Part shown: positions 13,700-60,422 of the stretch, in pieces | Layout of the letters: each line of letters starts with the position of its first letter | How positions within the stretch are numbered: the first letter of the stretch is position 1 | Position numbers and translations under genes: made by a program | Source of the DNA: Takakia lepidozioides | Lineage: Eukaryota > Plantae > Bryophyta | DNA: 64,000 nucleotides | Direction: 5' to 3' | Assembly: GCA_030704615.1 (NCBI GenBank) | Contig: CM060732.1 | Location: 186,001-250,000 of the forward strand | Notes under the pieces: model-generated | Told to the model about the DNA's origin: nothing | Database searches by the model: none | What the model saw: only the letters and a program-made list of their open reading frames with translations

Positions 13700-14299
13700 C
13701 CGGATGTGAATGTCGTCAACGCCATTCAAAACATTCCATTCAATGATACTGTAAATACACCCTAATCCACGTGAATGCAAACTCTCGCTTTGGAATGACA
13801 CAGACATAGAAGTGAATGTCGTCAACGACATTCACTTTGGATTTGTGAATACACTGCTAATCAAGCCTAATGATTTCTCAAAAGAGGCAAAATCATTGGA
13901 TAGAAATCAGAAACTCGAGTAAGGAACCCTCCCCAAAAACTCAATGGATATTCATAACGAACATAACACTGAGGACCTCATAATAACACTGGATATGAAT
14001 GGCGTCAATGCCATTCACAAAATTACGAACAAGGAACCAATTAATACACCTTTAGCTCCCAATCCATGTAAATTCAAATTGTCGCTGGTGAATGACACAG
14101 ACATAGAAGTGAATGTCGTCAACGACATTCACTTTGGATCTCTGATAACACAGCTAATCAAGCCTCAAGATTTCTCGCAAGAGGCAAAAGCAATGCAGAA
14201 CAACTGAATGTCTGCATTGACATTCAGCAAACTGAAGTGAGGAACCCTCACTGTAAACTCTATGGACATTACAAAAACTTACATAACTCTGAGGACCTT
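13700..14299. repeat. About 300-bp tandem duplication carrying the palindrome GTGAATGTCGTCAACGACATTCAC
   Basis: Palindrome variants near 13706, 13812, 13997, 14109 and 14206. Confidence 0.85.
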
Positions 14300-18157: not shown

Positions 18158-19620
18158 GATATGTGTTCTCTCTGCACGCAGCCACACTGGCCTATTGAAT
18201 GAAGGAAATCAAGATCATGGTGTCACTCCGACAGTAAAGCACTTTGGCTGTATGGTGGACCTTCTTGGACAACTGGATGAGGCAATGGATCTGATTAATA
18301 AGATGCCAATCAATCCAGATGTTGTGGTGTGGAAGGCCTTGCTTGGTGCCGGCAGAATCCATGGCAATGTGGAGATGGCTGAACGTGCGGCGACATCTAT
18401 CCTCAAATGGGATGAACAAGATGCCTCGACTTATGTGTTGCTATCAAACATCTAAGCTGCAGCTGGCAGGTGGGATGATACTACAAAGGTGAGAAGAATG
18501 ATGAAGGTCAGAGGGGTTAGAAAGGAGCCAAATTGCTGCTGCATTGAGGTTGGCACATGCTTTGTATTGCATGATGTGGGGGAGGAGGAAAATGAATTTT
18601 GTCTTTGCCACTGTGATAAGTTGAGTTGGGTGTTTCCTAGAACAAATCATGCATAGGTCCTTGCCTTGCTGCTAGCAGTTGACAATGAAAGGAGCTCTAG
18701 AAAAGGGGAAGGAGGTCCATGGTGACATCGTCAAAGCTGGAATTGTATGAGATGTCATCTTGAACACTGCCCTGGTTGACATGATGCCAAATGTGGGTGC
18801 ATGAAGGATGCGAAGGGAGTTTTCAACACTCTGGCTGAATGAGATGTGGTGTCGTGGAACGCGATGCTTGTAGGGTATGCACAACAGGGGCACAGGATGG
18901 AGGCTTTAGAGACCTATGAGCAAATGATGGGGGAAGGGGTGAAGTCCACACTCCATATCACATTTGTGTGCATTTGCAATGCTAAGTTGTGCAAGCCTGG
19001 TAGGCCTGGAAAAGGGCAAAGAGGTGCATGGTGACATCATCAAAGTTGGAATTGTACCAAATGTGTTCTCTCTGCATGCAGCCACACTGGCCTACTGAAT
19101 GAAGAAAGACGCTACTTCGATTCCCCGAGTCAAGATCATGGTGTCACTCTGAAATTAAAGCACTTTGGCTGCATGGTGGACCTTCTTGGACGTGTGGGAC
19201 AACTGGATGAGGCAGTGGACCTGATTAATAAAATGCCAATCAATCCAGATGTTGTGGCGTGGAAGGCCTTGCTTGGTGCCTGCAGAATTCATGTCAATGT
19301 GGAGGTGACAGAACATGCGGCAAAATGCATCCTCAAGTAGGATCAACGGGATGCTGCAACTTATGTGCTGCTGTCCAACGTCTATGCTGCAGCTGACAGG
19401 TGGGATGATACTGCAAAGGTGAGATAAATGATGCAGGTCCATTAAGCTGTGAGAAAGGAGCCAGGTTGCAGTTGCATTGAGGTAGATAATGAGGTGCATA
19501 CATTCAGTTTAGGAGACCAGTTACATCCACGAATTCAGGACATCTATGCCGAGCTGGGGATAAATTGTCTAGGCAGATGAAGGAGGCAGGTGCTTCCAGA
19601 AATGAATATTGTCTTCAGGT
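18158..19620 (+). pseudogene. Scrambled PLS-E(+) PPR fragments (two E-domain copies plus PLS repeats)
   Basis: HFGCMVDLLG..MPINPDVVVWKALLGA..YVLLSN..AAAGRWDD; FVLHDVGEEE; VSWNAMLVGYAQQG. Confidence 0.93.
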
Positions 19621-23595: not shown

Positions 23596-25569
23596 CTACG
23601 CAAAAAGAGATCCAATTGATAGACTGCTGGCTAGAGCAGCCACTAAGAGGCGAAACGAGGGAGATACAACCCAGCCAGCAGAACCTGGAACTCCCCCTGG
23701 AGATGTGCTTGGAGAGGTCAGAGGAGTAGGAGAGGTGCTGCCACCAGACGCTATGGCAGGACTAGTTGAAGGAGAACCAGAAATCGCTGGACTCCTGGGA
23801 GCTGCAGTAGACAACGAACCTGATAAGCTTAAAGTGTCCAATATGCACATCGCATGAGTTAAGATTCTTGAAAAGATTATAACTTTATCCTTGGGCTTGG
23901 AGCTATGGGCAGACTCTTTGAACAATGAGGAGTAGGAATTCGAGATTTCAGTGACGTGAAATATTATAACTTAAGCAAAAACATCACTTTCGTGGACGCA
24001 TCACAAGGTGTTTACCAGTGTCGACGTAGTGGACCACTGGAGCACAGGATCTCTCTTTAACAGACTAGTTCTAACCTCTCGTCCCTAGGTATCTGCTAAA
24101 TAGGAATTTCTCGTGTTTGACTGTGAACTGTGGGGCCTATATGGGGGCAGGCCAGGTCCTCTTTGAATAAAGAACACAACTTCACGATAACTGCTGATGA
24201 CACTGGGTTGAACATATGATTACAGTTCATTTCACACTGAATGGTTTTTGGTAACACAAGATAAAAAGATACGACCCGTGGAACAAATCAATAACTTTCC
24301 ACTGACTGCATTGCATGGGCCTCTGAAGACTGCGGGTTGAGGACAGATTGTACCCTTGGGTTTCGCGGAGGGAGCCTTCGTAGGAGGAGAGGGCGCAGGA
24401 ATGGCCGTTCCGTTCAAAAGCGCTGCGACAACAAACAAATGGCAGATCATCAGTTGGAGAAAAGCTGTGTACAGTCTCCCACAGCTTCACCTTACTAGGT
24501 AGTCGTAATTCCAAAAATTACAATGGGATAATATCCAGTACTTAATGAACCAGACAGTCGGATTCAGAGAGCAGACATTCAGACGAAAAGAGAAGAATCT
24601 TGACAGGTGCAAGTACGTATAAAGAAATTCAGGGAATAAAAGGCCTGCACGATGCGCGACTATGGTGAGTGCTCAGCTTGCAAGAAAGAGATTCCAAATA
24701 CCAAGAACAGCGCACGTTGTGCAATTCCGAATAGAGGCCCTACAGTCCAAGATTTGAATAGACTTAACTTCAAGTGCAAAACTACCGACCATGATAGATT
24801 TAATCGTTGTACACTCCGAATTGTTACTTAAGACAGCCCAGAGAAAAATGGCAGCTTGTCGCTGACGATGCAGTTCACATGCATTAAGTTACTAAGATCT
24901 TTTATGCAGCTATCTGTATATCAGTTCTAGAATGTTACAGATCTTCACTTTCAAGAACCGTTGAAATGAAGGTGCATCTTGTGATGAACCTGTAGCGATC
25001 AACTGATAAGCAACAACAGTCAACGTGTCCACAATGAAAGAATAAAAATAAATATATATAGTAGCAATTCTTGGTAACAACTGCATTCACATGTATGCAC
25101 ATGATACAACAGGTGTAGCGAGGAAAAGAAAACAAGAACGCAGCCTGAACGCAGGCCTCCATGCAAAGAAAAGGGCGAAAACACAATGAGTACAGTCCGC
25201 GTGAGTGCATTGGAGAATAGGGCCTGAAGACTTACCAGTGCACTGGCTGGGATCAGCCTGGACCTTGCAGAGCCCAGGGAGCATCAAAGCCAACGTAGAA
25301 TTGATCCCAGAGCCTCCGGTACCTGCGCCACCGGGAGCGATCAGTTCACACAAGCAAATGGGGCTGGTCGTTCTAACGTCCTTGATGGCGGCACAACACG
25401 CTTCAGATGGGGACGTTCCCTCCCCACCCTCCACAAACGAGAGACAAGGTACCATCTCTGTAAACTGGTTACTACAGTCGGTCGGGGTACCGGTCGCCCC
25501 AGCAAAGCTCTTTACACTCCACATCATCATCGCCAGTACTGCAAACGTCCACGCAGCGGTTGCACCCAT
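23596..25569 (-). CDS. GPI-anchored non-specific lipid transfer protein (LTPG/xylogen-like); exons 25569-25236, 24422-24354, 23819-23596; about 208 aa
   Basis: Signal peptide, 8-Cys motif C-C-CC-CLC-C-C, Ser/Pro-rich linker, hydrophobic C-terminal tail; two phase-1 GT-AG introns join in frame (627 nt). Confidence 0.93.
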
Positions 25570-26149
25570 TCCTCTGCTCTCAATTGATGTGTGGTCCGAG
25601 ACAAAGATGAGCAACTTGTTGCTCAGATGACTGCTCCAACCACGATCTTGAACTGCACAGCACAGGGAGAAGGACGAGGGTGCCACGACTGAAAGGAGAC
25701 ACCTTCTTGGTTCTTGGGTCTCTGGAGAGAACCCACAAAAGACACACAGAGAAGATGCAGCAGCGCAGATGTGCGTGACTTGAAGAGAGTACTGTGGAGA
25801 AGCGTTCCCCGTCCCTTCCTTCCTCAATAAACGCTGGCAGTTTCGGGAAGTTGGAACACTTCACCGTCAGAATCCCTACCTTCGACCTCCTCAGATGGAG
25901 CATTCCGGATGTAATTGCCCACTCCAGGTGGATTTGTGAAGCAAACAGCTCGATAGAAGTAATACCCGTATCATGTAATATAATACCGTTCCGGATAACT
26001 TGCGCTGTAGATTAATTACTACGTGATTAGTGCATAATTTTGGACCGGAAGATAATAGGAATAATGTAAGAACTTAATGTGTCAGATGGTATGGCGGTTT
26101 CGGCATGTCAAATCTTCCACACCCTCTCTTGAGAGTGACATGGAACTGG

Positions 26150-28799: not shown

Positions 28800-30760
28800 G
28801 AACGTGAGCGTGGCCCCGTGAGCGTGTGAGCGTACGCTCACGCTACGTTGGCTCACAGCCCAGCCCAGCCCAGCCGTGGACGGAATCGTGGAAGATGTTG
28901 GGCCTAATACCGTGGGTGCACACCTATATCCGCGGAGATATGTAACATCCAAAAGGAAAATGCATTATGTAAAGACTTTGTTTCCCTATTTCCGAGGATA
29001 TATATATTTTTTTGTGTGTGTTCATTCCAATAGTACCCTAGCCCTATAACCACGACGTTTCTTCCCTAGGCTGGCCCCGGGACTCGGGAGAGCTACAGGT
29101 CCCTTGCAAAGACATGAGTCTTGCAAATGCCTCCGCGTACATTGGCAGCTCAAAAGATGGGGGTAGGCTTGAAAGGAAGTTGTTGCTTTGATCAGCTGGG
29201 AAAAACGGGCTGGAACCCAGTGGTCTCTTGCACAGGAGCAGCCAAGCAGAAAACTTTACTGACCAGCAAAAATGAATGGAATTGGAGGATGAGTGGAATT
29301 TAACTATCATGGAAATTGTTAACATTAACTTGCTGACTTACTCACAATCAAGCATAATTCCTAGACGTGAAACATGTGCAAAACTCGAAATCTGATTGCA
29401 TGATAGACTATAAACCCTAAAACCTACAACCTAAAACCTAAACCCTAACACTAAGTTAGATCCCCAACCCCAAACCTTGATACCAACCTAAAACCCAAGA
29501 GCCCTGTGACCCCCAGACTTCCAGCAGGGGGCATGAAAATGACAACACTGCCTAGATGCGTACCGGAAGCATGAACACAAGAATGACCCCTATAAGTGGT
29601 GTGCGTTACCACACACCACTTTCAGTGGCATGTGCATTTGAGAAATGGACACACTGCAGAAATGTCCTTATACAATATACACACAAGGAAATCCTCCAAA
29701 AGTGGTGTGCGGTGTGTTAGAGGGCTGTCTGGGACTTAGACAGTTTTATGGGTTCTGTGGGGTACCCTTAATTTTGTGCAGACTTATGGATGGTAGGCTC
29801 AGACCAACAGAGGCCTTAGGGATGACAGACACAGGCCTTAAGGGTGGTAGGCAGGCTCACACAGTCAGTCACATGCTTACATAGCCTGACACAGCTTGTC
29901 ACAGTCTTACACAGTTAGACATAGCTTGACACAGCCTGTCACAGCCTACCACAGTCAGACACAGCCTGACACAGTCTGATACAGCTTGTCACAGTCTGAC
30001 ACAGTCTTATACAGCTTGACACAGCTTTACACAGCCTTACACAGCCTATCACAGCCTATCACAGTCAATTACAGTCTATCACAGTCTATCATAGCTCGAC
30101 ATAGCCCGACACAGCCAGTCACAGTCCGACACAGCTTGGCACAGCCCGTCACAGCGTTCACAGGGAACGGTTATCATTGGCAGGGAACAATTGTGTGGGA
30201 ACGACATCTGCAGAGGGAACGTGCATTCTGTCTTGGATGACAGTTAGTTAGTTAGGCGGTTAGAACAGCTTGCAGGTAGAATAGGCAGAGTAGCAACATG
30301 GAGGGGGGCACTTCTGGGGGCATTTTTGGGGTTATCAAGGAAGGAGATCAGGCGGAGAGCACGATCTTGAGCGCAAGGATGGAGAGCACGGTGAAGGAGG
30401 AGAGACAATCTATTGAGAGGAGGAGAGACAATCAGTGGCAAGTGCATGTGCGTCCATTTCCCTTGATGTGTCGTGCCACAAAGACCGAGTCCTCAGCTCC
30501 TTGCAAAGCATTTCAGACTTCAGGGGTGGGATAGATGATAAAGGTGAAGTCTGAAATGACTGTAAAGGGCAATTCATTCCGCGGAAATATGAACATCCCG
30601 CGGAAATACGTCCTCTATGTTCAAAATTAACACGCACACCACTTACAGGGGTCGTTCTTGTATTCAAATACTTCACGCTGACGTGGCGGGGGTACGGGCT
30701 CATGCTGACGTGGCGTGAGCGTACGCTCACACGCTACGCTCACACCGTAGCGTCGCTGCC
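28800..30760. mobile_element. Non-autonomous TIR DNA transposon in a RibA intron
   Basis: Inverted ends AGCGTGTGAGCGTACGCTCACGCYACGT at about 28820-28850 and 30703-30740; internal AAACCCTAA-like and CACAGCC repeats. Confidence 0.7.
29860..30160 (+). repeat. Degenerate 10-bp CACAGCCTGW minisatellite
   Basis: Tandem acagcctgac/acagcttgtc units. Confidence 0.9.
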
Positions 30761-39412: not shown

Positions 39413-40735
39413 CCTCCCCCACATCATGCAATACAAAGCGCGTGTAAGGCACATACCCCGCCTCCTTTCATCTGCCGACAATCTTCTCAGCTCAGCATGG
39501 ATTTCCTTAATTCTGGGATGCAACTTGTCATCTACAGCGAAGATATGCACCCTGTTGCCAACCTCAATGCAGCAGCGACCTAGCTCCTTTCTAACCCCTC
39601 TGACCTCCATTATTCTTTTCACCTTTGCAGATCATCCCACCTGCCAGCTGCAGCATAGCAACACGTAAGTTGCGGCATCCTGTTCATCCCATTTGAGGAT
39701 AGATGTTGCCGCACGTTCAGCCATCTCCAGATTGCCATGGATTCTACAGGCACCAAGCAAGGCCTTCCACACCACAACATCTGGATTGATTGGAATCTTA
39801 TTAATCAGATCCACTGCCTCATCCAGTTGTCCAAGAAGGTCCACCGTACAGCCAAAGTGCTTTACTGTCGGAGTGACACCATGATCTTGATTTCCTCATT
39901 CAATAGGCCAGTGTGGCTGCATGCAGAGAGAACATACACAGGCATTGCAAAGGGAAACAAACGTGATGTGATCGGGGTTCGCCCCTTCCCCCATCATTTG
40001 CTCATAGGTCTCCAAAGCCTCCACCCCGCGCCCTTGCTGTGCATACCCTGCAATCATCGCACTCCACGACACCGAATCTCGTTCAGCCATACTGTCAAAC
40101 ACTCCCTCCGCATCCTCGACGCATCCTCGACGCATCCACATTTTGCATACATGTCCACGAGGGTATTGTTCAGAATCACATCTGGTACAATTCTTGCTTT
40201 TGTGATGCAACCATGCACCTCTTTGTCCTTTTCCAGGGCTGCCAGGCTTCCAAACGCACAGACGTGATATGGTCGGGCTTCACCCCTTCCACCATCATTT
40301 GCTCATAGGTCTCCAAAGCCTCCATCCCACGCCCCTGCTGTGCATACCCTGCAAGCATCACGTTCCACGACACCACATTTCATTCAGCCATATTGTTGAA
40401 CACTGCCTTCGCATACTCGATGCTCCCACATTTGGCATACATGTCCACGAGGGCATTGTTTAGAATGACATCGGGTACAATTCCAGCTCTGACAATGTCG
40501 CCATGGGCCTCTTTGCCCTTTTCCAGAGCTGCCAGGCTTGCACATGCATTGCAAACGCACACAAACGTGATGTAGTTGGGCTTCACCCCTTCCCCCATCA
40601 TTTGCTCATAGGTCTCCAAAACCTCCACCCCACGTCTCTGCTGTGCATACCCTGCAAGCATCGCGCGCTCCACGACACCACATCTCATTCAGCCATATTG
40701 TTCAAAACTGCCTTTGCATCCTTAATACACCCATA
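39413..40735 (-). pseudogene. PLS-E+ PPR gene fragment broken just before the DYW domain
   Basis: PLS repeats, WKALLGACRIH, YVLL, V..RVHIFAVDDKLHPR..EIHAELRRL, FVLHDVGE then an abrupt end. Confidence 0.95.
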
Positions 40736-43877: not shown

Positions 43878-44342
43878 AAATGCGGCGCCGCATTTTCGTT
43901 AAGGCAACTTTGAGTTGCATCCCGAACGGAAATGCGGTTTCATGCCTAGCATACAAAAGTGCCGCATTTCAGTTGCAGTGTTTCATGATTTTCAATCACA
44001 ACGGAAATGCGGGACCGCATTTCCGTTCCACTGTCACATACCTTACTTGTTGGACGGAAATGCGGTGCCGCATTTCCGTCCCACTGCTGCATGCCTGAGA
44101 TACAAAACGGAAATGCGGCGCCGCATTTCCGTTCTGGAAAGTCCGAAGGTACGACTCGGACAGAAATGCGGTGCCGCATTTCAGTTGCAGTGGTTCATGA
44201 TTTTCAATCACAACGGAAATGCGGCGCCGCATTTCCGTTCTGGAAAGTCCGAAGGTACGACTCGAACGGAAATGCGGTGCCGGATTTCAGTTGCAGTGGT
44301 TCATGATTTTCAATCACAACGGAAATGCGGTACCGCATTACC
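43878..44342. repeat. Array of 22-bp palindrome GGAAATGCGGYRCCGCATTTCC with exact 53-bp period
   Basis: Starts at 44003, 44056, 44109, 44162, 44215, 44268 and 44321. Confidence 0.95.
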
Positions 44343-44589
44343 ATTCCACTGTTACAAATATGTAAAAATATAGCAATACACCCAAAAAAAAACACCCATC
44401 ATGACACATGTCAATTTGCTAAGGGACCACGGTAAAAACTGCAACGCGCCACGTGTTGCAACCGGATTAGCACACCCGCAGTCATGGAGAGCGAACACTT
44501 TGCCACGTGTCATTTCCTGTATGGAGCACGTGTCACTCTTGCACAGCCGCTGACATGGACTACAGTCATATCTGCCATGTCACAACTGA

Positions 44590-46987: not shown

Positions 46988-47701
46988 TCACGTTGTCAAT
47001 GGGACTTCGATTGCTCTGAAAACTAGCTCATGAGTCATCGGGCTCCTCCAGGTAAACTGGATTGCAGCCGTTGTACCGCCCCTGTTGATGTTCACCACAA
47101 TGTCGTGCCCTTCAATCATACCACCATCGAATATGGAATGCTTCACGTTTTCATCGTCCACACCAATGCGAATGTCCCCATACAATGGAGAAGAGGAGCA
47201 CACTCCTTCAGGAGTATACGTCTCTCCGATGGAGTCCACCCACGTCCACTGGCAGCAATTCCACCGCAACAGCATAGCAGTGCGCATTCTTCTGTATGGG
47301 TGCCCGTTGTAGCTGGGAAAATCAGAATCAAGGATGCGCAGGAGCCACGGACTCCTCAGACCAAGATTGTCACCCCGCTCGAAGGCGTAGTGGCCTGGGA
47401 TATACTCAAAAGCGGACAATGTTTCCACATTCGAACCAGTATCTTCTGTGTAAACTGTGTACCAGATAATGATGTCTCCCGATGTCGCCGAATACATTGC
47501 ATAATCAAAGCCTCCATAAGGGCAGTCATCCCGGTTCCAGAAGCACGACATCCTTGCAAAGGAGGACCTGAGGACGTCTTTGATGCCGATGACAATGACC
47601 TTGTGGACAGCAACGAAGCCCTTAGATTTTCGAAATGATGAGAAGCGGAAGAGCAGTGCAGGCTCCAATAATGGAACAGCTGGGTCCCACGTACCCACCA
47701 A
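46988..47701 (-). CDS. Hypothetical protein (237 aa ORF), paralog A
   Basis: Open frame with protein-level similarity to 48078-48676. Confidence 0.65.
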   Translation of the reverse strand: MVGTWDPAVPLLEPALLFRFSSFRKSKGFVAVHKVIVIGIKDVLRSSFARMSCFWNRDDCPYGGFDYAMYSATSGDIIIWYTVYTEDTGSNVETLSAFEYIPGHYAFERGDNLGLRSPWLLRILDSDFPSYNGHPYRRMRTAMLLRWNCCQWTWVDSIGETYTPEGVCSSSPLYGDIRIGVDDENVKHSIFDGGMIEGHDIVVNINRGGTTAAIQFTWRSPMTHELVFRAIEVPLTT

Positions 47702-48077: not shown

Positions 48078-48676
48078 TTGAGCGTACTCCACCAATCTTT
48101 TGCAAGGATGCCGTGCCGCCGCAATCCTGCTGATTGTCCTTACCATGGCCACGATTATGCTATGTTCAAACCAGAATCAAGAGACATCATTGTGTGGCTC
48201 TTTGTTTTCACAGACGCTTCTGGAATCAAGCGGGAGTCTTTGCACGCAATGGAGTATTTGGAGGGCTATAATTGCTTTGAGCGAGGTGAGGGCGAGGGTC
48301 AATGAGGTCCGTGGGTCCTGAAAATTGTTGACCTCGATATACCAAGCTGGAATGGGATGCTGGACAGATCACGCACGGCCTCGCTTTGGCGTGGGAACTG
48401 CTGCCAGTGGACCAGGGAGGACGGCACCGGGGAAAACTATATTTGTGGAGTTCAATCCGCTCTTCCAGTGTATGGAGACATTCGGCTGAGTTGCGAAGAC
48501 GAATCACATGGGCACATGAGGCCCACAGTCAGCTTGTCAATGATATCATTGATGGGCATGACATTGTCGTCAGCTCCACCAAGGGCACCAGAACGACCGC
48601 ATTGCAGATTACCTGGAGGTGCCGGTTCAGTAAAGAGCTTGTTTTGAGGGCCATCGAAGTTATGTCAACTTGGTGA
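48078..48676 (+). pseudogene. Hypothetical protein paralog B (one stop, one frameshift)
   Basis: Shares SFARM, DCPY..DYAM, DII.W, FERG, PW.L.I.D.D.PS.NG, NCCQWT, P.YGDIR, I.GHDIVV and ELV.RAIEV with paralog A. Confidence 0.7.
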
Positions 48677-48951
48677 CGCCCATGTAGAAGGCGGAAGGGA
48701 TTAGATTTGTCTGGAGTTGCTAAATGTGAGACACCGTGTTCGATCAATAAAACAATCCATCGTACCTCACTTCTGTGTGTTGTGTTTGATTGTGTTCAAG
48801 AACTGCTATAATTGGCCCACTGTCTACAATTTGTGGTCTAATTTCTACAATGTGTCTGTCCACATGAATATACCAGAGTCAGCGATATCAGAGTCCTGAG
48901 GTGAAGGAAATCCATGTATGAGTAAAAGGAAACATGTACATGCTCAAGCTC

Positions 48952-49915
48952 GGAAATGCGGCACCGCATTTCATTTTTCTCCATGCAGCGATTTCTGGCA
49001 GCTCCCTTTCCTCCGTTCTGGTCGTAACGGAAATGTTGTACCGCATTTCATTTCTTGACATGACATTACCATACTTCGAATTGGAAATGCGGCACCGCAT
49101 TTCCATATTGGACCTTGAATTGTCCAAGCATGTCCAATTGCCAATGCATGTCCATGTCCGTTCTGGAAATGCGGCACCGCATTTCCATGTCCGTCATCAA
49201 ATTTTCTTATTGGACAATGGAATACGGTGCCGCATTTCCGTCAAAGGGTCTGGAATTGGACAATCAACGATGTCTGTTCTGGAAATGCGGCACAGCATTT
49301 CCATGTCCGTCATCAAAATTTCGTATTGGACAATGGAATGCGGTGCCGCAATTCCATCCAAGGGTCTGGAGTTGGACAAACAGCGATGTCCGTTCTGGAA
49401 ATGCGGCGCCGCAATTTCTTATTGGACAATGGAATGCGGTGCCGCATTTCTGTCCAAGGGTTTGGAATTGGACAAACAACGATGTCCGTTCTGGAAATGC
49501 GGCGCCGCATTTCCATGTAAGTCATCGAAATTTCTTATTGGACAATGGAATGCGGTGCCGCATTCCCGTCTAGCATCATGGAATGCGGAGCCGCATTTCC
49601 GTGGATGGGTCTGGAGTTGGAAAAACGTCCATCTCCAAAATGGAAATGCGGCACCGCATTTCCATGTCCGCCATGTAAATAACGTGTTCGACCTCCGCAT
49701 GCGGGGTGGCATTTCCATTTCCCTAAAACTGTCGTGTCGAAAACGGAAATGCGGCACCGCATTTCCGTTCGGCCGAACAGTTTCTGATGTCCAAACCAGG
49801 AAGTGGAAAATTGTTCTTGCCCCGGTTTTGGAAATGCGGTGCCGCATTTCCAAACGAGGTTTTTGCAGTTCCCACATTTCCATTCCGACATGGAAATGAA
49901 GTGCCGCATTTCCGA
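48952..49915. repeat. Second array of the GGAAATGCGGYRCCGCATTTCC palindrome
   Basis: About 17 copies, many spaced about 54 or 62 bp. Confidence 0.95.
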
Positions 49916-51083
49916 TTTTGGGAGGGACGTGGTTTGGACGATGGTGTCGTTGAGAAGCACATGGGAGAGGGGACATGAAGGACGGTGAGAATTTCCTTTA
50001 TATACTCTGGAAGAGAATTTAAATGTACATAGAGTTAATTAAAATTCTACCAATCTTGAAAATCATCACTATCGTTGTCATGTCATTGACTGTCTGCTCC
50101 CCTTCCACCGCGTCATTGCCTTTCTCATGTCCAGCGGACTGCTCGTTGGCCAGGCTTTTGAAAATCCCATCTTCCCCTTGCGGAACCGACCATCTTACAT
50201 CCGTTGGGTCGTCGTCCTCCCTGTCTGCATCGCTCTCTTCCGCTGAATCCCCGGGGGGTGCACTCTTTATAAACTGTGCGTATCACGTGCGTTCGTCGCC
50301 TAATAAAAAAACCCCCTGTATACGGGTCCTTGGATAATTTATACCCCCTCTGTACATACTTTTTGAAGATTATAAAATCCCCTCCTGTAAATATACAAAA
50401 ATTTACAATTTTCGAAAAGTACCCCCTTCTGTATGTATATTCTCATTTTTCATCATTAAAAATAACCCTCCAATATGTATATGTATGTTTTTATATTATA
50501 TCGAATTTATTCATTTAAAACATAATAAAATCTAACAAATTAATTAAAAAAATTATTTGCCTGTGATAAAGTTGTCAAAGATAGCTATTTCCTAGCTAGT
50601 TTCACACTAGTGGTAAAATAACTTGACAGCTGTCGTGCGCATACATATCGCTACACAACTACATCGCTGTCCAAAACCACACAACACATGTGCACACCAC
50701 ACACTAGTATACCATAGTCTACCACTAGTCCCAGCCACTAGTCCAAACACTAGGCGACAGACTAAGTCCATCACTAGGCTGCCACTACGCTGCCCACTAT
50801 GGCAGTCACTAGTCCACACAATCGCCCCCCTAGCTGGTGCTTAGGTCCCTCTAAGTCCAGGTAGCCACAAGATGTTGATAGTGACCATAGCCTCACTAAG
50901 TCCTCCACCACTATCCCTACTACACTCAAACTCGATAGATCAAGAGGCCGGGTGCAAGAGTTGCCCCATCGTTAGTCGCCGTCTTGCAACCTGTGAACTT
51001 GAGCTTGGGATCTCATGTGTATTGACTCCTATGAGCTTGGCCTCCCATGTCTTGTTAGCTGCCTCCAGTCATGTCCACTGCCA

Positions 51084-51230
51084 CTATCCCAAGCAGTGTG
51101 GACACAACCAATCTCCGTCAGGAACCTTCTCAAGAGGTGGTGTCAAGCATCCCATATGCCAACCCCTTGAGCACCGATCACACACCAGCATGGTGGCTGC
51201 CCCTTTGGCAGACCCACAGAGCATGCACCT
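51084..51230 (-). CDS. PHD finger at the C-terminus of Gypsy Pol
   Basis: CMLC..MLVCDRCSRGWHMGCLTPPL..VPDGDWLCPHC matches C4HC3. Confidence 0.93.
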   Translation of the reverse strand, partial: RCMLCGSAKGAATMLVCDRCSRGWHMGCLTPPLEKVPDGDWLCPHCLG

Positions 51231-54200
51231 CAAACCTGCAGGTACCACTGCCAAGTTTGGGTCAACTCTGCCATCGACATTGGGAAGGTGACATGGCGCA
51301 CAATTACGCACATGGTCTTTCCAAGTCATGCCATCCCGACCCTCTAAGATCAGGACCCCTGAGGGCAACACCTCTCGAACCCTCAGAATAACACGCCCTG
51401 CAGTAACATCCAGAGTCGTAGGAGCAGTCTGCTGCAAATAAACATAGTCACCAGGGCTAAACCTCCGAACCCCAGGACGATATCCTCCACCACGTATAGT
51501 GGCATACCTCAACGTATCACGGTGCTGTGCAATGGCAAGGTTCTCAAAAGCCATGGGCATGACTTTCTTGAACAACTCTGCACGCTGATCACATGCACGT
51601 ACCCACACGTCCGGATCGTCAAGGTTAAGGACTTGAGCAGTGTCCCTACGAATGGCTGCAGGCAAATCCGGCTCCCGGCCAAAGAGAAGGAAATATGGTG
51701 AGAAGGAGGCAAGTGATGCTTGTTTGCTGAACCTGTAGCCCATGGCTAACCAAGGAACCTGAAGATCCAATCTCCTAGGTGTCCCTTCTGCAAGCCATAC
51801 TTGCGCAAACCCCTCTTCACCGTCTGAACAACTCTCTCTGCTAAGCCATCGGCCTCAGGATGATCCCGAGAAGTGGTGCGGTGGTCTATCAAGGCTTTAT
51901 CACACAAAGCCTGAAACTCCCCAAGAACTCTCTCCCTTGGTCCGTGAGTACCTCAGCTGGAGCACCAAATCGGCTAAGCACACGATCCAAGAATGCATAC
52001 GCAGCCCCCTCACTAGCCTTGTCAGGCAATGGAACCAACTCAATCCACTTGGAGAAGTGCTCCACCATCACCAACACATATCTGTGGTGGCGCATAGTCA
52101 GTGGCAACGGTCCTGCGAAGTCAAGACTCCACTTGTAGCCCAATCCCATGATAGGTAAAGGATGCAACTGTGGTGTAGGGGCGTTGAATGAAGCACGCAC
52201 CCTGTCACACACCATGCACCTAGCCACAAACTGTTGCACCTCTGTATGCATACCACGCCACCAATACTGCCCCTGCAGTAAACTGTGAGTGCGTCGCACT
52301 CCAAAATGCCCCAACTCCTCATGGGCATGCCGCACTAACCGTGCACGCTGTGTGGGGTGAGGCACAATCCTCACCCGACCATCCTCACACTCGAAGTAGG
52401 TGTATCCCCTCCCACTTGAACCTCTTGGCTCGTTGCAGGATCCGATCCCTCTCCCTGGCAGTCACAATGGCTGCCGTGTCTCCCGTGCGGAGGTAGTCCA
52501 ACACAGCCGAATCCTCATGTATATCTCTGGCACCACCTAGCTCATCACTAGCCTCAGGGTCCTCAGACACTCCGTCTACAGTCATCCCTGTTGTAGGTCC
52601 AATCTGACCTCCCGATGCCAAGATACACAAAAATGCAGATGCGTGCCATCCCGGCACCATCTCCTCGTCCGTCTCACCATGCCACCGAGCTCTAGTGTCA
52701 TCCTGCTGGCTCATGCATGGATTGCGACTAATCCATCCGCATCCCGATTGACCAAACCCGGTCGATGCACAACCTGAAAGTCATACTCCTGGAGTATAAG
52801 TGCCCACCGTGCAAGCTTCCCCGTAAGCTTGTCTGACTCCATCAACCACTTGAGTGGCTGGTGATCCGTGACAAGGGTGAAAAGATTGCCGTATAGATAG
52901 CACCTGAAGTGTGCCACGGCCCACACTGCAGCTAAGCACTCTCCCTCATATGAGCTGTACTTAGCCTCTGCAGCGTTGTTCGAGCGCTAACGTAAAACTC
53001 TCTCTTCCCTCATCATCCACCTGTGTGAGCACCGCTCCAAGCCCCAGCATGCTCCAATCCGTATGCAGCTGAAAGGGACGCCCCTGATAGGTCGTCTCAA
53101 GATAGGCGCCGAGGTCAACCTCGCTTGAGCTCTTGAAAAGCTCGTTCCTGCTCATCTTCCCACTGCCACTCCTGGTCCACCTTGGTCAGCTTGGTTAGAG
53201 CCTTTGCAATGGTACTAAATCCCTTGACAAACCGTCTATAATAGTTTGCCAACCCCATGAAAGCTCGAACTCGGCTCACATCCGTGGGGCGTGGAATTTG
53301 TGCAATGGCCTCTACCTTAGTCTGCTGTACCCCCAATCCTCCAGGATATATCATGTGACCCAGATACTCAATCTGGTTGTGGAAAAACTTGCACTTCCCC
53401 GGATGCAACTTCAATCCGTGCGCTCTCAAGCGCTCCAATACCACCTGAAGGTGTCTCTCATGCTCCTCCATCGTAACACTAAAGATGATGATGTCATCTA
53501 TGTAGCACCGAGCAAAGTCCACCCCTGCTAGAATCCTATCCATGACTCTCTGAAACTCTGCAGGAGCATTCTTAAGCCCAAATGGTAAGAACCGCCACTG
53601 ATATAGGCAATCCTTGCCGTGCTCATTGATCCCCAGAATGCCGTCTTCTGCTTGTCCGCCTCCTTTATTGGCAACTGGTGATATCCGGATCGTAAATCCA
53701 AAGTGCTAAAGGCCTTAGCATGCCCGATGGCATCAAAGATCTCCTCTGGTGTTGGCATGGCATACTTATCGGACTTGGTCTGACGATTTACAGGCCGGTA
53801 ATCACCGCACATACGTCTCTCCGTCCAATTGCCATAGACATCCTTCTTGGCTGGCATCACTGTGGCTGAAGCATACTCTCCACCAGAGAGCTCCACCAAA
53901 CCTGCCTCCCAGAGATCTTGAGTCCTCATCTGAATCAAAGACCTCTCCATGTCACTGTATCTATAGGGTCTCCGAAAGATTGGCGTGTCAGTGGCCAACT
54001 CAATACGGATCTCTTGACCCTTCAGTGCTCCCAAGTCCTTCAAACTGAAGGCAAAGCATTCATGTAAGCCCTCAGGAACCGCGTATACGCGTCTCGTCCT
54101 CCGGTTGACAATGGTCCAATGTCAGGCTCCCAATTGTCCTCCGTAACTACAACCTTAAGTCCAGTGGGCTTAGAGGTAGAGGACGCGTCCCGTGGTTGCT

Positions 54201-54479
54201 ATGCCCTGAAACTCTTGAGCAGTACTCCATGCCTGCTCATCATGAAAAGACCTCATCCTGACCCCATCATCTCATCATTGAGACCCTCCTCAACCGAAGA
54301 AGAATCCCCAACCTCATCTATCACAGCCGCCTTGGCTGCCAACCCCTCTGAACCTCGAGCACCTCCACGTGTGCCATGGATGCATGCACCCCGTGGTCCT
54401 CACATGCTCGCCCCCCACTCACTGCTGAACCGTCTCGGTAGGAGAGAGACCATTGAGGGAAGTGTACTCCGCACTCTGC

Positions 54480-55450
54480 GTTGCTCAGCCAGAGCCAAGC
54501 TGATAATCCAGGTCAAGCAATTGAGATCCATTGCTTGCCCCAAAACTTGACGACGTGATGCCTCAGAAAGAGACGACACCGCCGTGGTACCAGTGGTTTA
54601 AACCCATTGCCGCTCACGCTCGTCAGCATTAGGCTCCACTAACTGCTGCAACTGCGATCCCACAGGAGGGCCAGGTCCACTATCCCGAAAAGCATGCGAT
54701 CCTGGGAAGCTGAGCAGTGTAGGTAATGCTGCCCGTGGTTGACCCCACCTTTTTGACCACTGCCAAAGGCGAACGGCATCGTGTCTCACACGCTGAGACT
54801 GCCTCCTGCTGTGTCCAGATGTTATCCACTGTGAGATGTGCTGGCCGCTGCGCCCCATCAAATGCACTCTTGAGCAGTGCGGGTGGCATCAAGTTAGTCC
54901 ACCATAGGTGGACGATGAGCTCGTGACCCCACTGTAGTTGCATCTAGCAACACTGCTGACCCAAGCCACGACCGAATTGATGCACACTGGCCATCACCCT
55001 GGCCCGAGAATCGCCATCAGAGCACCTTCTCCAAGATGTATGCTGGAGATACAGCTTGATGAAGCTGCAAGTGGCGCAAAACCCGCACCATCTCCCAAAA
55101 CAGACCCGACCTCCTCGAGTCTCGCAATCCATTGCCATGCCGGCTGATGAATGCCCTTGCAGGCCAACCTGCCACTACCAGATCAATGGAGCCAACCCGC
55201 TCAAAATCCTGCCCCCCAGCAACGAAATGTCTGCTGGCAAGGCCTGCTGATATCCACGAATTGCAGACACCGACAACAACTCCGGGTACCGCTGCCACCA
55301 ACTGAGCAAATGGCAAAGTGAAACGCGTCGTGCAGTTCTCATCCCTCTCCACATACAGGTAACGCCGAACTCGTACACCTGCTTGTAACACAGCAGCCAT
55401 CCGGTGCCGATCCCGCCAAACAAGTCCAGAAGACAAATGCCTTCATCCGG
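54480..55450 (-). CDS. DNMT3/DRM-like C5 cytosine methyltransferase domain within Gypsy Pol (frameshifted)
   Basis: Motif I LLDLFGGIGTG; II YLYVE; IV DLVVAGWP(CQ)GHS..GLRD.RSGLFWE; VI YILE.V; VIII SRAHRP..WTNL; IX/X ERER..GF..TT..LSEASRRQVLGQAM. Confidence 0.88.
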
Positions 55451-58400
55451 ATACTGCCCACACAATAGGTGTGGTGTCCAATGGAGACAATTGGGTGGTC
55501 CTGGTGCAATCCCACCACTCTCCTCCTCTCCTGACGGTACAAAAGCCTCCACCCAGGCTTGTTGCACCCGTCGATCAGCATCCCGCTGCAAATCCTTGCT
55601 CGTGCCCCACAATGGAGTCTGAGCAGCCATGGTAGGCAACTCCGCCATACCATACATGTCATCCTGCTCTCCCGGAGGTGCGACCATCCTCTGAATGAGC
55701 ATTGCCCTCAAGCAACTCTCTAGGCAACTCACTGCCGTTGTGAATGCTGCTAGTGTCGGCATCTTGCCTCGCTGGGCAACCGCAACTCCTCCTATGAACG
55801 TCACAGGGAGCTGCACACGCCGGCCCTCCCCTGACTGCCATGCAGGCCTATAGGAAGCTGATTCCTCCCAAAAATCCAGGGGTGAAGCCCATGGGGTAAC
55901 ACTGCCCACCAACCAGGACATCGTATGAGACTGCGTCTGTCACAATGGCCTGGTGGCTCGCATACTGAGCCATCTGTAGGTGTTGATCCGGCCGTAGTCT
56001 GATAGCCAACTCACGCCGTGTCATGCCCCGAGCCTGCTCCGATCCTCCAAAGACGTCTGGATCTGGAAAGGACAAGCTCCATATCCGCCTCCGTGAGCCC
56101 CAAGCCTGCAATAGCAGCTCTGCCCAACATCAATGGCTGAGCTCCCGAGTCCAACAAGACCCGCCACAGTGGCCGGTACCTCTTGCCTGAGTCCACTCAA
56201 ACAGAAAATGCCATCTGGTGTTGTCTAACATGACAACTCCAGGTGTCACCATGGCGCGCTCAATGGCTGGCCTAAGCTTGGCAGCTCCATCAACCTGGCA
56301 GCTGCAGCTTGCCATGGCGCCGCCGTGGCAGTTTAACCCTCAAATCCGAGGATCCCTCCGGCACTATACCTCCTACTACTCCGCAGAAGATGAAGTAACC
56401 TCCCCACTCTTCACAGAGTTAGCTGCCAGCCTGAACACTCAGCTGGTCTTACCCCGGCGTCGCAATCATGGTAGCCGAGAACAATGAGCCTGGCACACAG
56501 ATGTGGCCGCTCCTAGCAGCACACTAGCTGCCGTAGCCTTGGCAACACTAGGTAGTGGTGCTACCCGTGTAGCTCTCCCCAATGGCATAGTAACCTCAGC
56601 CCTCCCCTCGGTAACAGTCGGGCGAGAACTAGGTGCCATGGATGGCGTCGACACTGTCTCCGCCAATGTGAATGACTGAGGAAGCCTAGCCTGACGGCTT
56701 GCCTCCCCACGCTGTGGATCCAACTCCACCTCTGCACCTCGTGGCTCAGGAACTCGTGCTGCTCCTCGAGTCACGGCTGCAGCAGACTCCACCTGCACTA
56801 GTGGTAGTGCTGCTCACACATGAATCCCATGCCTCCCATATCTCCTCCCTCAGGAGCAGGAGGTGGACCATCCGGCCTTAGAGCCGGTACCACCTGAGCT
56901 GTAGCCATGGCAGCGAGCCTCTGCTCTAGCTGCTGAAGCCGGGTGGCCATGCCTTGGTCAACACCCTGACCTCCGCGTCCTTGGCCACGTTGAGCTTGCC
57001 CTTGGCCTGCACCTCGTGGCTGGCCACCTCGTCCTCTCTGGGCTGCTCCACCTCGCCCCCGGCCACCATTGTTCCCTTGGAACTGGCCTGGGCGCAACTC
57101 AGGATGCAAACCATAACACTGGGCCTCTCCATGCCCGTGCTTGCCACAATGCCACACTGCAATTGTGCAGGCTGTGCATGTGCCGGCCCTTGCCTCCCTC
57201 TGGGCAATCCTTCTTGCATGGGTCCTCCACATGTCCAGCACACCACATCCGCCCGTTGTTGGCCAGCAAATGAAGGGAGAGACCCCTGCATCTGAGGTCC
57301 TCTCTGCCCTTCCCTGAGCTTCACCTGAGCCCCTTGTTGCCTTGAGCACGTTGAGGTAGTGGTGGCTAGGAGCACCACTACCCCGTGGGGTCTCCTTAGC
57401 AAATCCCACCTGACCACTCGTTCCTCCACCATGTGAGCTCTATCCGCTCTGCAGCAAAAACACATTTGCTAAGGTGGGTTGGGCGCTTGTAGGAGAGTTG
57501 CATCCCGCACCCTTCTCCTCAGCTCCTTGTCCAATATCCCATACCAGAATTGGACTGCCTGAGCTTCCGTAACCCCTTGGGTTACATTTATCAAGCGCCT
57601 CATGCGAGTGAAAGCCTCCCTCAAGCTCTCGGTCGGCTTCCGTTGGAACTCTTGCAAGCTCCGCAACTTCTCTGTCCTCACCCCTTGGTAGTTCCCTCTC
57701 AACTCTTCGAAGAACTCCACAACAGGGTTGAAGGCAGGCACGGGTGCTAGTGCTGGTGCGGTGGTAGTGGCTTGGGTGGACGTCGTAGCTACTGTACCAC
57801 CAGTCCCACTGCTGCTTGCTGAAGCTGCCGGTGCAGCGGCAGGTGTAGCCACTGCCTCGTGGCTCTAGTGCCCCTAGTGATGGAGACATAGTCGGGTGAC
57901 CAGTACATCCTCCACTCCTCGATCTCAACCTCATGCCCCGCCTGAACTCATGGTAATCATCCATAGGCGGCCCCTCAAGGTGCTGAAACAGCCCTTCCAT
58001 GCCATGAACGGCGTAAATAGTTGTGGATTGCGCATTTGCTGCAAATCACACCAACTATCAAACTCTTGGATAAAATCATCCAACTCAATGGTGCCCACCG
58101 CCCCAGAGTACCTTCGTGGCCCTTGGTAGCTCCATACATCTCCTCCATTGTGTCCCACAACAATGGCAAAAAAACAACTTGCACCGCCGGTATGAGTCCT
58201 CCCGATTCACAATCCGAATCAGAACCTTCCGTAGAAGACACAGGAGGTGAAGGTGGCCTAAACCGCACACCTCGTCTCGTGTACCCACTAGTATCGCTAG
58301 TGCTCGAACCGGCACTGTCCCCAGCAACTAGTGGCACCTCCGTGTTGACACTCAACCGGTCATGAACATGTCCCTAACCCCTCTTCACAAGGTAACCGGG

Positions 58401-59039
58401 TAGAGAACCTGTTGCGGCTTATGGTTTGGAATACTAAGTTCCTAACATAGCCTACACCTGTACCTGCATCCACCGCAAGCACTCCTATGGTTGGCTGGTC
58501 ATCACCTCCAACCTCACCACAGGAGAAACAATGATGGTCTGGCTGGTCATCACCCCAGCCTCACCATCGACAGCATGCTCTAGGACTGGCCGGTGATCAA
58601 ATCCGGACCAATCACCTATAAAAACAAGCGCCCACACAAAACTAGCATGGCGCACAGTCAAGCATGCAGGTATGGAGGGGATCCAAACACAAGAAATCAG
58701 ATCGACAACTCCCCCACACCAAAAAACAACTCCACGGTGTTGCTCCTGCAAGGACACCCCAGCCCAAACCCGGACTGACTCTTGCCTCCACCTACGGAAA
58801 GGTCTTGGCCTAATGAGAGGGTGGAAACTAGGAGGAAGAGAAGCTAAAGCAATGCCTAATCCCAGCATGCTCTCATCCCAACACTCTGCCTCTCCTCTCT
58901 ACCCTCACTTGCATGACCATGGGAATATCTTGAAGATACTCCTCAAACCGCCCTCCACGAGCTTCAAAATTCGGCCTTCCAGACCACATGCCAGTCCTTA
59001 GGCAGTCCACCAGTGCCTCCATGAGTCAGCACAGGCCGT

Positions 59040-60422
59040 CCACAGGTCAACACGGGCCACCACAGACCAGCACAGGCCCCACAGCTCACTGGTCACAGCC
59101 ATCACAGTCCCACAGGCCACTGGGCACAGCCTGTCGTAGGCCCTCACAGCCTGTCACAGCCTCAAAGGCCTCAGGCACGGCCTGTCACAGCCCCTCACAG
59201 CCCCTCACAGCCCAAAGGCCATGGGCACGGCCTGTCACAGCCCTCACAGCCCATCACAGCCTGTCACAGCTTGCCACAGCCTGTCACAGCCTCAAAGGCC
59301 TCAGGCACGGCCTGTCACAGCCCCTCACAGCCCCTCACAGCCCCTCACAGGCCCCACAGGCCTCAGGGCACAGCCTGTCACAGCCCCACACAGCCCGTCA
59401 CAGCCCCAAAGGCCACTGGGCACAGCCTGTCATAGCCTGACACAGCCCGTCACAGCCCCACAGGGCACAGGGCACAGCCTGTCACAGCCCATCACAGCCC
59501 ATCACAGCCTGTCACAGCTTGCCACAGCCTGTCACAGCCCGTCACAGCTCCACAGGGCACAGGGCACAGCCTGTCACAGCCCATCACAGCCCATCACTGT
59601 CTGTCACAGCTTGCCACAGCCCATCAAAGCCCGTCACAGCCCCACAGGCCACTGGGCACAGCCTGTCACAGCCCGTCACAGCTCGCCACAGCCTGACACA
59701 GCCCGTCACAGCCCCACAGGGCATAGGGCACAGCCTGTCACAGCCCCTCACAGCCCCAAAGGCCATGGGCACGGCCTGTCACAGCCCCTCACAGCCCGTC
59801 ACAGCCTCAAAGGCCTCAGGCACGGCCTGTCACAGCCCCTCACAGCCCGTCACAGCCCCAAAGGCCTCAGGCACGGCCTGTCACAGCCCCAAAGGCCATG
59901 GGCACGGCCTGTCACAGCCCCTCACAGCCCGTCACAGCCTCAAAGGCCTCAGGCACGGCCTGTCACAGCCCCTCACAGCCCGTCACAGCCTCAAAGGCCT
60001 CAGGCACGGCCTGTCACAGCCCCTCACAGCCCGTCACAGCCCCAAAGGCCATGGGCACAGCCTGTCACAGCTCGCCACAGCCTGTCACATCCCGTCACAG
60101 CCCCACAGGCCTCAGGGCACAGCCTGTCACAGCCCCACACAGCCCGTCACAGCCCCAAAGGCCACTGGGCACAGCCTGTCACAGCCCCACAGGGCACAGG
60201 GCACATCCTGTCACAGCCCATCACAGCCCATCACAGCCTGTCACAGCCCCACACAGCCCGTCACAGCCCCAAAGGCCACTGGGCACAGCCTGTCACAGCC
60301 TGACACAGCCCGTCACAGCCCCAAAGGCCACTGGGCACAGCCTGTCACAGCCTGACACAGCCCCTCACAGCCCCAAAGGCCACGGGCACAGCCTGTCACA
60401 ACCCATCACAGCCCCTCACAGC
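59040..60422 (+). repeat. About 1.4-kb CACAGCC-based minisatellite with higher-order units
   Basis: Tandem cacagcctgt/cacagcccgt/cacagcccct/aaaggcc units; related to 29860-30160. Confidence 0.97.

Follow-up and report, generated by a model that had tools for sequence, protein, structure and literature searches.

The window analysed here is a stretch of 64,000 nt from the bryophyte Takakia lepidozioides (assembly GCA_030704615.1, contig CM060732.1, positions 186,001 to 250,000 of the forward strand), and positions without a prefix refer to it. From about 58.7 to 50.6 kb its minus strand harbors a Ty3/Gypsy retrotransposon copy that is old, inactivated and truncated at its ends. Stop-to-stop translation, Pfam and alignments gave the domain order Gag, protease (PR), DNMT3-type C5-methyltransferase (DNMT), reverse transcriptase (RT), RNase H (RH), integrase (IN) and PHD finger. 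The copy belongs to a streptophyte element family in which Gag, protease and methyltransferase share one reading frame, which is followed by an in-frame UAG and then by RT, RNase H, integrase and PHD finger. The following features were assigned to the window copy (numbers with L and P denote nucleotide stretches and proteins used for comparison).

58462-58723, minus strand: 5' leader blocks whose sequence is conserved in copies from Marchantia and Calypogeia (blastn comparison with L005 and L009).
56897-57979, minus strand: Gag with a degenerate CCHC zinc-knuckle region (PF03732, E = 4.5e-4, weak).
55884-56273, minus strand: aspartic protease with the active-site stretch LLDSGAQ, aligning to the protease regions of Marchantia P0102 and P0090 and Sphagnum P0125.
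54436-55432, minus strand: DNMT3-type C5 cytosine methyltransferase, motifs I to X unpermuted, inactivated (tblastn, frameshift-aware alignment).
54193-54201, minus strand: in-frame stop with its context TAG CAA CCA (stop codon 54201-54199), frame boundary, conserved among relatives.
53121-54198, minus strand: reverse transcriptase (PF00078, E = 2.6e-25).
52714-53118, minus strand: RNase H (PF17917, E = 4.6e-23).
51591-52461, minus strand: integrase, H2C2 zinc-binding part (PF17921, E = 5.1e-17) and catalytic core (PF00665, rve, E = 2.4e-11).
51093-51227, minus strand: C4HC3 PHD finger, forming the very C-terminal end of the integrase frame (PF00628, E = 3.6e-11; stop at 51086-51084).
50620-50828, minus strand: 3' end region with purine tract, repeat segment A1 and the junction to segment B (direct reading; collinear with L004, L005, L006 and L009).

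The Pfam models RVT_1, RT_RNaseH, Integrase_H2C2 and rve followed each other in the order of Ty3/Gypsy elements, and the same order was found in intact relatives. The RT of the window copy showed 78% identity to the translation of Sphagnum L006 (with two frameshifts) and 75-77% to Marchantia P0102, and the integrase showed 84% identity to Marchantia L005 (with two frameshifts). The Gag region aligned to residues 75-253 of Marchantia P0090 with 50.6% identity (E = 4.5e-43), and the counterpart of the protease in ORF1 of the intact copy L007 matched Asp_protease_2 (E = 1.3e-4). In the 5' leader, blocks of >60 bp showed 74-78% identity to L005 and L009 (E down to 7e-17); upstream of these blocks the similarity faded and a 10-bp tandem array started (59.0-60.4 kb). 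A Gypsy element with an unpermuted, DNMT3-like methyltransferase between protease and RT had been proposed in an earlier sequence-only reading of this locus, and Pfam, tblastn and alignments bore this out.

The methyltransferase domain was read by protein-to-DNA alignment tolerating frameshifts, with three relatives as references and an X at each break of the window sequence. The alignment to P0253 from Calypogeia fissa (279 of 440 residues identical) placed motif I (LDLFGGIGTG) at 55429-55400, motif II at 55364-55338, motif IV at 55184-55139, motif VI at 55043-55023, motif VIII at 54929-54890, motif IX at 54636-54601, directly followed by a stop at 54600, and motif X at 54555-54508. The catalytic Cys codon of motif IV is lost to a frameshift near 55160, and motif VI reads EKV in place of ENV. 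All the motifs that had been noticed in the letters were thus recovered from 55429 down to 54508, unpermuted and in DNMT3-like order.

Profile tools that do not tolerate frameshifts cannot demonstrate the window domain by itself. When ten separate stop-to-stop pieces were submitted to Pfam, PF00145 was found on one piece only (E = 0.027; 14.3 bits, below the cut-off of 22), and a phmmer search of the PDB with the window piece gave only M.HhaI, at E = 0.4. Searches in the opposite direction, by tblastn of intact relatives against the window, resulted in E values of 1.7e-35 for P0007 (spanning its residues 210-532), 2.8e-75 for Marchantia P0090 and 8.8e-37 for Sphagnum P0125. The piece 55020-55442 (141 residues) matched 49 proteins at E <= 1e-3 among 1.84 billion, and the intact relatives found with it passed the Pfam threshold for DNA_methylase (PF00145, E = 1e-9 to 2e-14). 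The PF00145 profile, which the sequence-only reading had suggested as a check, was positive for the intact relatives; the window pieces on their own stayed below threshold. By sequence, the family is assigned to the C5 cytosine DNA methyltransferases (PF00145), and the window copy is classified as a pseudogene.

The damage to the window copy is heavy. Depending on the reference, between 12 and 17 frameshifts were counted in the DNMT region of about 1.37 kb, along with one or two in-frame stops. All three references agreed on about a dozen frameshift positions and on the stop at 54600, and two of the three placed a second stop at 54421. Gag-PR showed up to 19 frameshifts and four stops in 2.3 kb, some of the frameshifts in gag and the linkers possibly being artefacts of alignment scoring, so that counts there are upper bounds. 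From RT to PHD we counted seven frameshifts and one stop in 3.1 kb; the stretch 53118-52379 (RNase H onward) accounted for three frameshifts and one stop, and the last 633 nt (51719-51087) were free of frameshifts. Per base, the 5' half (55450-58400: gag, PR, DNMT) carried about fourfold the frameshifts of the 3' half (51087-54200), a contrast that may in part stem from alignment scoring in less conserved regions. The sequence-only reading had spoken of single-base frameshifts; these are present, but the extent of the damage was understated. Its coupling of a methyl writer to a histone reader cannot work in this copy, in which the catalytic Cys codon is lost, ENV is changed to EKV and frameshifts and stops interrupt the frame. 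The set of catalytic motifs (Pro-Cys of motif IV, ENV of motif VI, RxR of motif VIII) is not kept intact, and a stop follows motif IX. The window copy is a dead relic.

Sequencing or assembly errors could also have produced the frameshifts, in which case the copy would be intact and active. Most breaks are small shifts, and error-prone long-read assemblies can generate such slips. We consider this very improbable, because the damage is uneven (about one break per 100 nt in gag-PR-DNMT versus seven in the 3.1 kb of RT-IN-PHD), because residues that are otherwise invariant are substituted (EKV for ENV), and because other long ORFs of the window, with 324 and 491 codons, are intact. In-frame stops and the loss of the terminal repeats likewise speak against an assembly artefact.

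The sub-threshold Pfam match, taken by itself, would also fit a one-off capture or nested insertion of a host DNMT3 fragment in this particular copy, or a chance resemblance of motifs. Elements collinear with the window copy from gag to PHD, with 68-73% nucleotide identity, were found in Marchantia polymorpha (L004, L005) and Sphagnum jensenii (L006), and RT protein identity to the Marchantia and Sphagnum relatives was 75-78%. The same architecture was present in Marchantia, Calypogeia fissa, Sphagnum fallax, S. jensenii, Closterium and Mesostigma. The domain occupies the same position in collinear elements from four or more species of land plants and from two streptophyte algae. In intact copies the DNMT is in frame with the protease and under purifying selection: two Marchantia copies gave a DNMT dN/dS of 0.21, and comparisons of Marchantia with Sphagnum gave 0.14-0.16. 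The collinear relatives, the shared frame and the purifying selection rule out a one-off capture or chance resemblance, to which we give practically no weight. The lack of the domain in other family members, which would have spoken against the sequence-only reading, was not found in Marchantia, Sphagnum, Calypogeia, Closterium or Mesostigma. The DNMT is a trait of the family.

Liverworts contain intact copies of the element, and peat mosses near-intact ones. An intact young copy of M. polymorpha Tak-1 (L090:4826-15656) lies on chromosome 4 (AP019869.1:10225128-10244964); its ORF1 comprises 1278 residues and its ORF2 1045 codons ending in the PHD finger, and both frames are open. At least 17 gene models of Marchantia are relatives of the DNMT, and weaker DNMT matches were seen in the chlorophytes Monoraphidium and Cymbomonas. 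In a tree of DNMT domains, the window copy branched first within a clade that also comprised the liverwort and moss copies and had strong support. Residues invariant among 31 members were Cys in motif IV, Glu in ENV, His and the second Arg in HRxR, and ERE...G in motif IX; the Asn of ENV and the first Arg of HRxR were kept in over 90%. That the lineage persists in an embryophyte, as had been proposed, holds for the window, which contains land-plant genes (PLS/E+ PPR and LTP_2), and independently for liverworts and mosses.

A scan of JGI metagenomes yielded 377 confirmed stretches encoding the family DNMT. The stretches L010-L089 are JGI contigs Ga0116226-Ga0116231, Ga0209208, Ga0209611 and others, and the closest stretches came from a few projects. 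These closest stretches showed the stop context of the Sphagnum type (TAG or TAA CAA CCC) and often many TAA or TAG stops; their probable source is DNA of host plants in samples associated with plants. The synonymous divergence between L005 (Marchantia) and L006 (Sphagnum) was only about 1.1, which seems low for a separation since the early radiation of land plants; slow rates in bryophytes, limits of the method due to saturation, or horizontal transfer may explain it. In a sister group of elements, a DNMT of this kind lies between RNase H and integrase (RT-RH-DNMT-IN-PHD); these elements are represented by L002:629-5819 and by the proteins P0045, P0278-P0283, P0096 and P0098, and their DNMTs form a separate, well-supported clade. 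From the separate clade and the other position it follows that the domain either moved within the polyprotein or was captured twice.

The class of the family enzyme was ranked against solved structures, in place of a tree with canonical DNMT3, DRM and Klebsormidium copies. A single Marchantia domain matched DNMT3A/B/C first in the PDB (about 1e-8) and DRM next, with no other class. A family profile built from 31 sequences scored 99 bits against DNMT3A (E = 2e-27, in three collinear stretches), followed by DRM (55 bits), M.HhaI (35), DNMT2 (33) and DNMT1 (13). Its match to DRM was permuted, the N-terminal part of the profile matching the C-terminal part of the chain. For the AlphaFold model of the Calypogeia domain (pLDDT 92.7), the top 50 Foldseek matches in the PDB were all DNMT3A/B/C (E about 1e-18, TM about 0.8). 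Profile and predicted structure both class the family enzyme as DNMT3-like and unrearranged, unlike the plant DRM order.

Intact copies contain two ORFs in the same frame that are split by a single TAG: ORF1 encodes Gag-PR-DNMT (1278-1451 residues) and ORF2 encodes RT-RH-IN-PHD (about 1040-1047 codons). This layout was seen in L007, L008, L044, L090 and L003 (whose ORFs run off the contig ends), and also in L026, whose ORF1 is broken. The TAG was located at L007:4799, L008:5408, L044:5083, L090:11835, L005:13672 and L006:12068, and the boundary stop was TAG in every copy with a downstream frame open for at least 700 codons. The methyltransferase, which the sequence-only reading had placed within Pol, does lie between protease and RT, but intact relatives encode it at the C-terminal end of the upstream Gag-PR-DNMT frame. 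With the TAG at this place, the methyltransferase would therefore sit on the abundant upstream product and not on the rare Pol part.

The context TAG CAA CCA is common to the window copy, Marchantia L004 and L005, L008 and L026; variants are TAG CAA TCA in L007, TAG CAG TTA in L044 and TAG CAA CCC in Sphagnum L006. In the window copy, L004, L005, L007, L008, L026 and L044, the six bases after the stop fit CAR-YYA, and UAG-CAR-YYA is the leaky stop context of tobacco mosaic virus and other tobamoviruses. An in-frame UAG, a CAR-YYA context conserved across diverged members and a continuing ORF are what a programmed readthrough site looks like in sequence. Murine leukaemia virus has such an in-frame UAG as well (gag-UAG-pol), with an upstream product made in abundance and an extended one made rarely. 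The element differs from both viral systems in having its protease and methyltransferase upstream of the stop, and readthrough is predicted here.

The C4HC3 PHD finger that had been noted after the integrase is real; no further domain follows it before the frame ends with the stop at 51086-51084. It has the C4HC3 spacing, and its match to PF00628 extends across the full profile. The same domain closes ORF2 in L007, L044 and L090. A chromodomain was not found at the integrase C-terminus, where Pfam gave PHD models only (PF00628 and two weaker PHD variants). Solved relatives in the PDB (E = 1e-17 to 1e-9) were CHD4, KDM5B PHD1, PHF12, KDM5A PHD1 and ATXR5, and further ones were DPF3, PHF21A, AIRE and UHRF1. 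These nearest solved relatives (CHD4, KDM5A/B PHD1, PHF21A, AIRE, ATXR5 and UHRF1) mostly bind the unmodified H3 tail (K4 unmethylated).

The ends of the element were compared between the window copy and the full liverwort copies. A direct-repeat search, a blastn self-search and short-word searches of both flanks revealed no pair of terminal repeats for the window element, so that a pair of long terminal repeats (LTRs), as expected for Ty3/Gypsy, is missing in the window. A motif search found the conserved 3' end motif only once in the element region. The 3' end consists of the purine tract AGGGGGG (about 50828-50821), segment A1 (about 50819-50631) and the A|B junction CGCACGACA-GC-TGTCA at 50640-50620, the start of segment B, in a form that matches Marchantia L090; the expected B and second A beyond this junction were not recognisable. 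Full liverwort copies (L005:7181-17469, L009:6855-16429, L090) show the layout B...A-B-A, with A-B-A-B-A in Calypogeia. The segments of L090 are 298 bp (B, 99.0% identical) and 113 bp (A, 100% identical). Full liverwort copies start with TGTCA and end with CGACA, and three of them are flanked by 4-bp target duplications (GGTT for L090, AATT and AGGT). The search for intact copies with paired LTRs that had been suggested thus yielded intact copies, but their ends have the B...A-B-A form instead of simple LTRs. The internal A|B junction resembles joined element ends, and the DIRS-like layout is odd for a Gypsy element with an integrase. The 10-bp array at 59.0-60.4 kb is unlikely to be part of the 5' leader: by self-search, the intact Marchantia leader is without internal repeat, and a similar array is present elsewhere in the window (29.9-30.2 kb).

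Besides the element, the window contains fragments of PLS-type PPR genes at 10712-11520 (plus strand) and 39413-40720 (minus strand), each with internal repeats of about 300 bp and broken by stops; the second fragment continues into E and E+ motifs. The only host gene that was clearly seen is one for a lipid-transfer protein, represented by its first exon at 25090-25827 (minus strand; LTP_2, E = 4.5e-15), whose start resembles a signal peptide. PLS-type PPR genes with E/E+ motifs and an LTP_2 gene mark a land plant. A second Gypsy element, unrelated and without DNMT, was observed at 14000-18300 (minus strand; CpG observed/expected ratio 0.82); the nearest database matches of its RT/RNase H ORF of 324 codons were metagenome proteins with 66% identity or less. 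Arrays of 10-bp units (CACAGCCYGT-like) at 59000-60422, adjoining the truncated 5' end of the element, and at 29868-30155 give rise to long artificial ORFs rich in PSQPVTA. Further arrays, with units of 53, 106 and 116 bp around a palindrome (GGAAATGCGGYGCCGCATTTCC), were located at 48900-49900 and 43959-44348, one of them just past the 3' end of the element. An inverted pair of related ORFs, 46988-47701 (minus strand, open for 237 codons) and 48078-48676 (plus strand, broken), had no Pfam match.

Retrotransposons carrying a DNMT are known from dinoflagellates and Klebsormidium, as the sequence-only reading had stated (de Mendoza et al. 2018, PMC5890265). KnitGypsy-Dnmt3 of Klebsormidium nitens is likewise of the streptophyte LTR/Gypsy type, with an unrearranged DNMT3-type domain in its coding region, conserved key catalytic residues and a Ka/Ks below about 0.2 (PMC5890265). 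Its repeats are "like a DIRS element" (A-coding-B-A-B), comparable to B...A-B-A in the Marchantia and Calypogeia relatives, and sharing DIRS-like repeats together with Gypsy domains argues for the same lineage. The relatives combine the Gypsy set and DNMT3 with DIRS-like repeats and purifying selection, while of these repeats the window copy keeps only the A|B junction. KnitGypsy-Dnmt3 differs in its host, an alga instead of a land plant, and a PHD finger and a stop that would part DNMT from RT are both unmentioned in the text of PMC5890265. No Klebsormidium protein was among the matches of our DNMT homology searches. The land plants of the 2018 survey were Physcomitrella, Selaginella and Sorghum; Marchantia and Sphagnum were not found in its supplement (PMC5890265).

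SymbioDIRS-Dnmt3 and SymbioLINE-Dnmt from Symbiodinium are also retrotransposons with a cytosine methyltransferase, DNMT3-like in the DIRS type (PMC5890265). They use a tyrosine recombinase or an endonuclease in contrast to the retroviral-type integrase, belong to another host lineage and represent an independent acquisition. The dinoflagellate DIRS enzymes methylate CG de novo in yeast, and CG methylation has been shown only for these (PMC5890265). Fusion of a chromodomain is the best-known route by which LTR elements steer integration, and chromoviruses resemble the present family in having a chromatin reader fused to the integrase C-terminus, a chromodomain there and a PHD finger here (Gao et al. 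2008, as cited in PMC6673714). PHD fingers in retrotransposons have been called widespread (PMC6673714). The PHD-bearing elements of a 2005 report and the CopiaMBD elements also captured epigenetic readers, in these cases not paired with a methyltransferase as far as they are described where cited (PMC6673714). A survey from 2025 repeats DNMT-bearing retrotransposons for "streptophytes and dinoflagellates" (PMC12344493). Our literature search, which covered few subscription journals, found only PMC5890265 and papers citing it for DNMT-bearing retrotransposons in connection with land plants. The kind of element is already known (PMC5890265); new, as far as the searchable literature shows, are the land-plant members.

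Taken as a whole, the locus is best explained as a dead copy of a Gypsy family with a UAG-split coding region and a DNMT3-type enzyme, together with the working model proposed for this family; we assign a probability of about 75% to this explanation. The model is derived from the intact relatives and not from the window copy, in which nothing of it can operate because the catalytic motifs are destroyed. Translation would usually halt at the UAG and provide Gag-PR-DNMT in Gag-like amounts, and occasional readthrough would generate the full polyprotein with RT-RH-IN-PHD and set the ratio of the two products. Placed in the upstream frame, the methyltransferase would therefore be made together with the capsid protein and be released by the element's protease. 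It may then be packaged with Gag. That it methylates the new cDNA of the element, or the element's own copies, de novo is plausible, at somewhat less than even odds. The PHD finger, in the position of the chromodomain of chromoviruses, would most likely tether the integrase to a certain state of the histone H3 tail. Insertion would be carried out by the integrase and produce copies like those of liverworts, with TGTCA...CGACA ends and 4-bp target duplications. Two parts of the model are hypotheses adopted from published systems: methylation of the element's own cDNA, which de Mendoza et al. 2018 proposed for the DNMT3s of retrotransposons (PMC5890265), and integration guided by the PHD finger, in analogy to the chromoviruses.

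Several points weigh against this explanation. DNMT activity in the family is a prediction from sequence, and the Klebsormidium enzyme showed no detectable de novo methylation in yeast, a result that its authors rated as inconclusive (PMC5890265). The CpG observed/expected ratio of the window element (0.53) equals the background of the window (0.54) and gives no sign of self-methylation. The acidic residues by which fingers of the KDM5B/AIRE type contact unmethylated H3K4 were not evident in the PHD finger of the element. Readthrough is suggested by conservation and context, and L003 (TAG GAA TTC) and L090 (TAG CAA CAA) depart from this context. The orthology to KnitGypsy-Dnmt3 is proposed from its published description. 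The upper-bound nature of the frameshift counts in gag and the linkers belongs here as well.

Two other roles of the enzyme have to be weighed. Instead of element cDNA, the DNMT may act on host chromatin or target DNA, either in the neighbourhood of the insertion or by blunting or mimicking host silencing. The enzyme would be plentiful in the cell as part of the abundant Gag-PR product and not of the rare RT-IN product, and the intact copies L007 and L008 are CpG-poor (observed/expected ratio 0.31-0.44), as methylated host DNA is. The members that were scanned, however, have no recognisable reader or DNA-targeting domain beside the methyltransferase (Pfam found PF00145, protease and CCHC in ORF1), and co-production with Gag favours packaging in particles together with the template. 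We regard an action on host DNA as rather unlikely. A methylation of element RNA (m5C), or a non-catalytic role in packaging through nucleic-acid binding, appears improbable. RNA methylation was raised by de Mendoza et al. for a LINE-borne DNMT (PMC5890265), and through its fusion to Gag-PR the enzyme here belongs to the part of the element that packages RNA. On the other hand, every one of the closest structures is a DNMT3-class enzyme acting on DNA, and the score of DNMT2, which acts on tRNA, is three times lower. No variation was seen at the Cys of motif IV, the Glu in motif VI, or the His and second Arg in motif VIII, as one would expect of an active cytosine-C5 enzyme.

Among the readings of the enzyme's role, methylation of the element's own DNA by a packaged DNMT is the one we prefer. 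In its widest form, it would describe an ancient DNMT3-carrying Gypsy lineage that passed from streptophyte algae to land plants, is potentially active in bryophytes, makes its enzyme at capsid level by means of a leaky UAG, has DIRS-like split repeats in spite of its retroviral integrase and steers its integration by a PHD finger; its copies in the genetic model Marchantia polymorpha are intact, with nearly identical ends. We put this full combination forward tentatively, with the odds against it.

Transposons are normally targets of DNA methylation, and why some of them carry a writer enzyme has been a question since 2018. The previous sole streptophyte example was in an alga, where activity of the enzyme was not demonstrable. 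The window copy is a fossil that adds one more land-plant host to the range of the family, and the intact copy of Marchantia places the question in a plant that can be transformed and for which mutants and methylome data exist. That the enzyme is encoded ahead of the conserved leaky stop suggests a need for it at levels like those of a capsid protein. Should it prove active on the DNA of the element itself, a transposon of land plants would be writing its own epigenetic mark.

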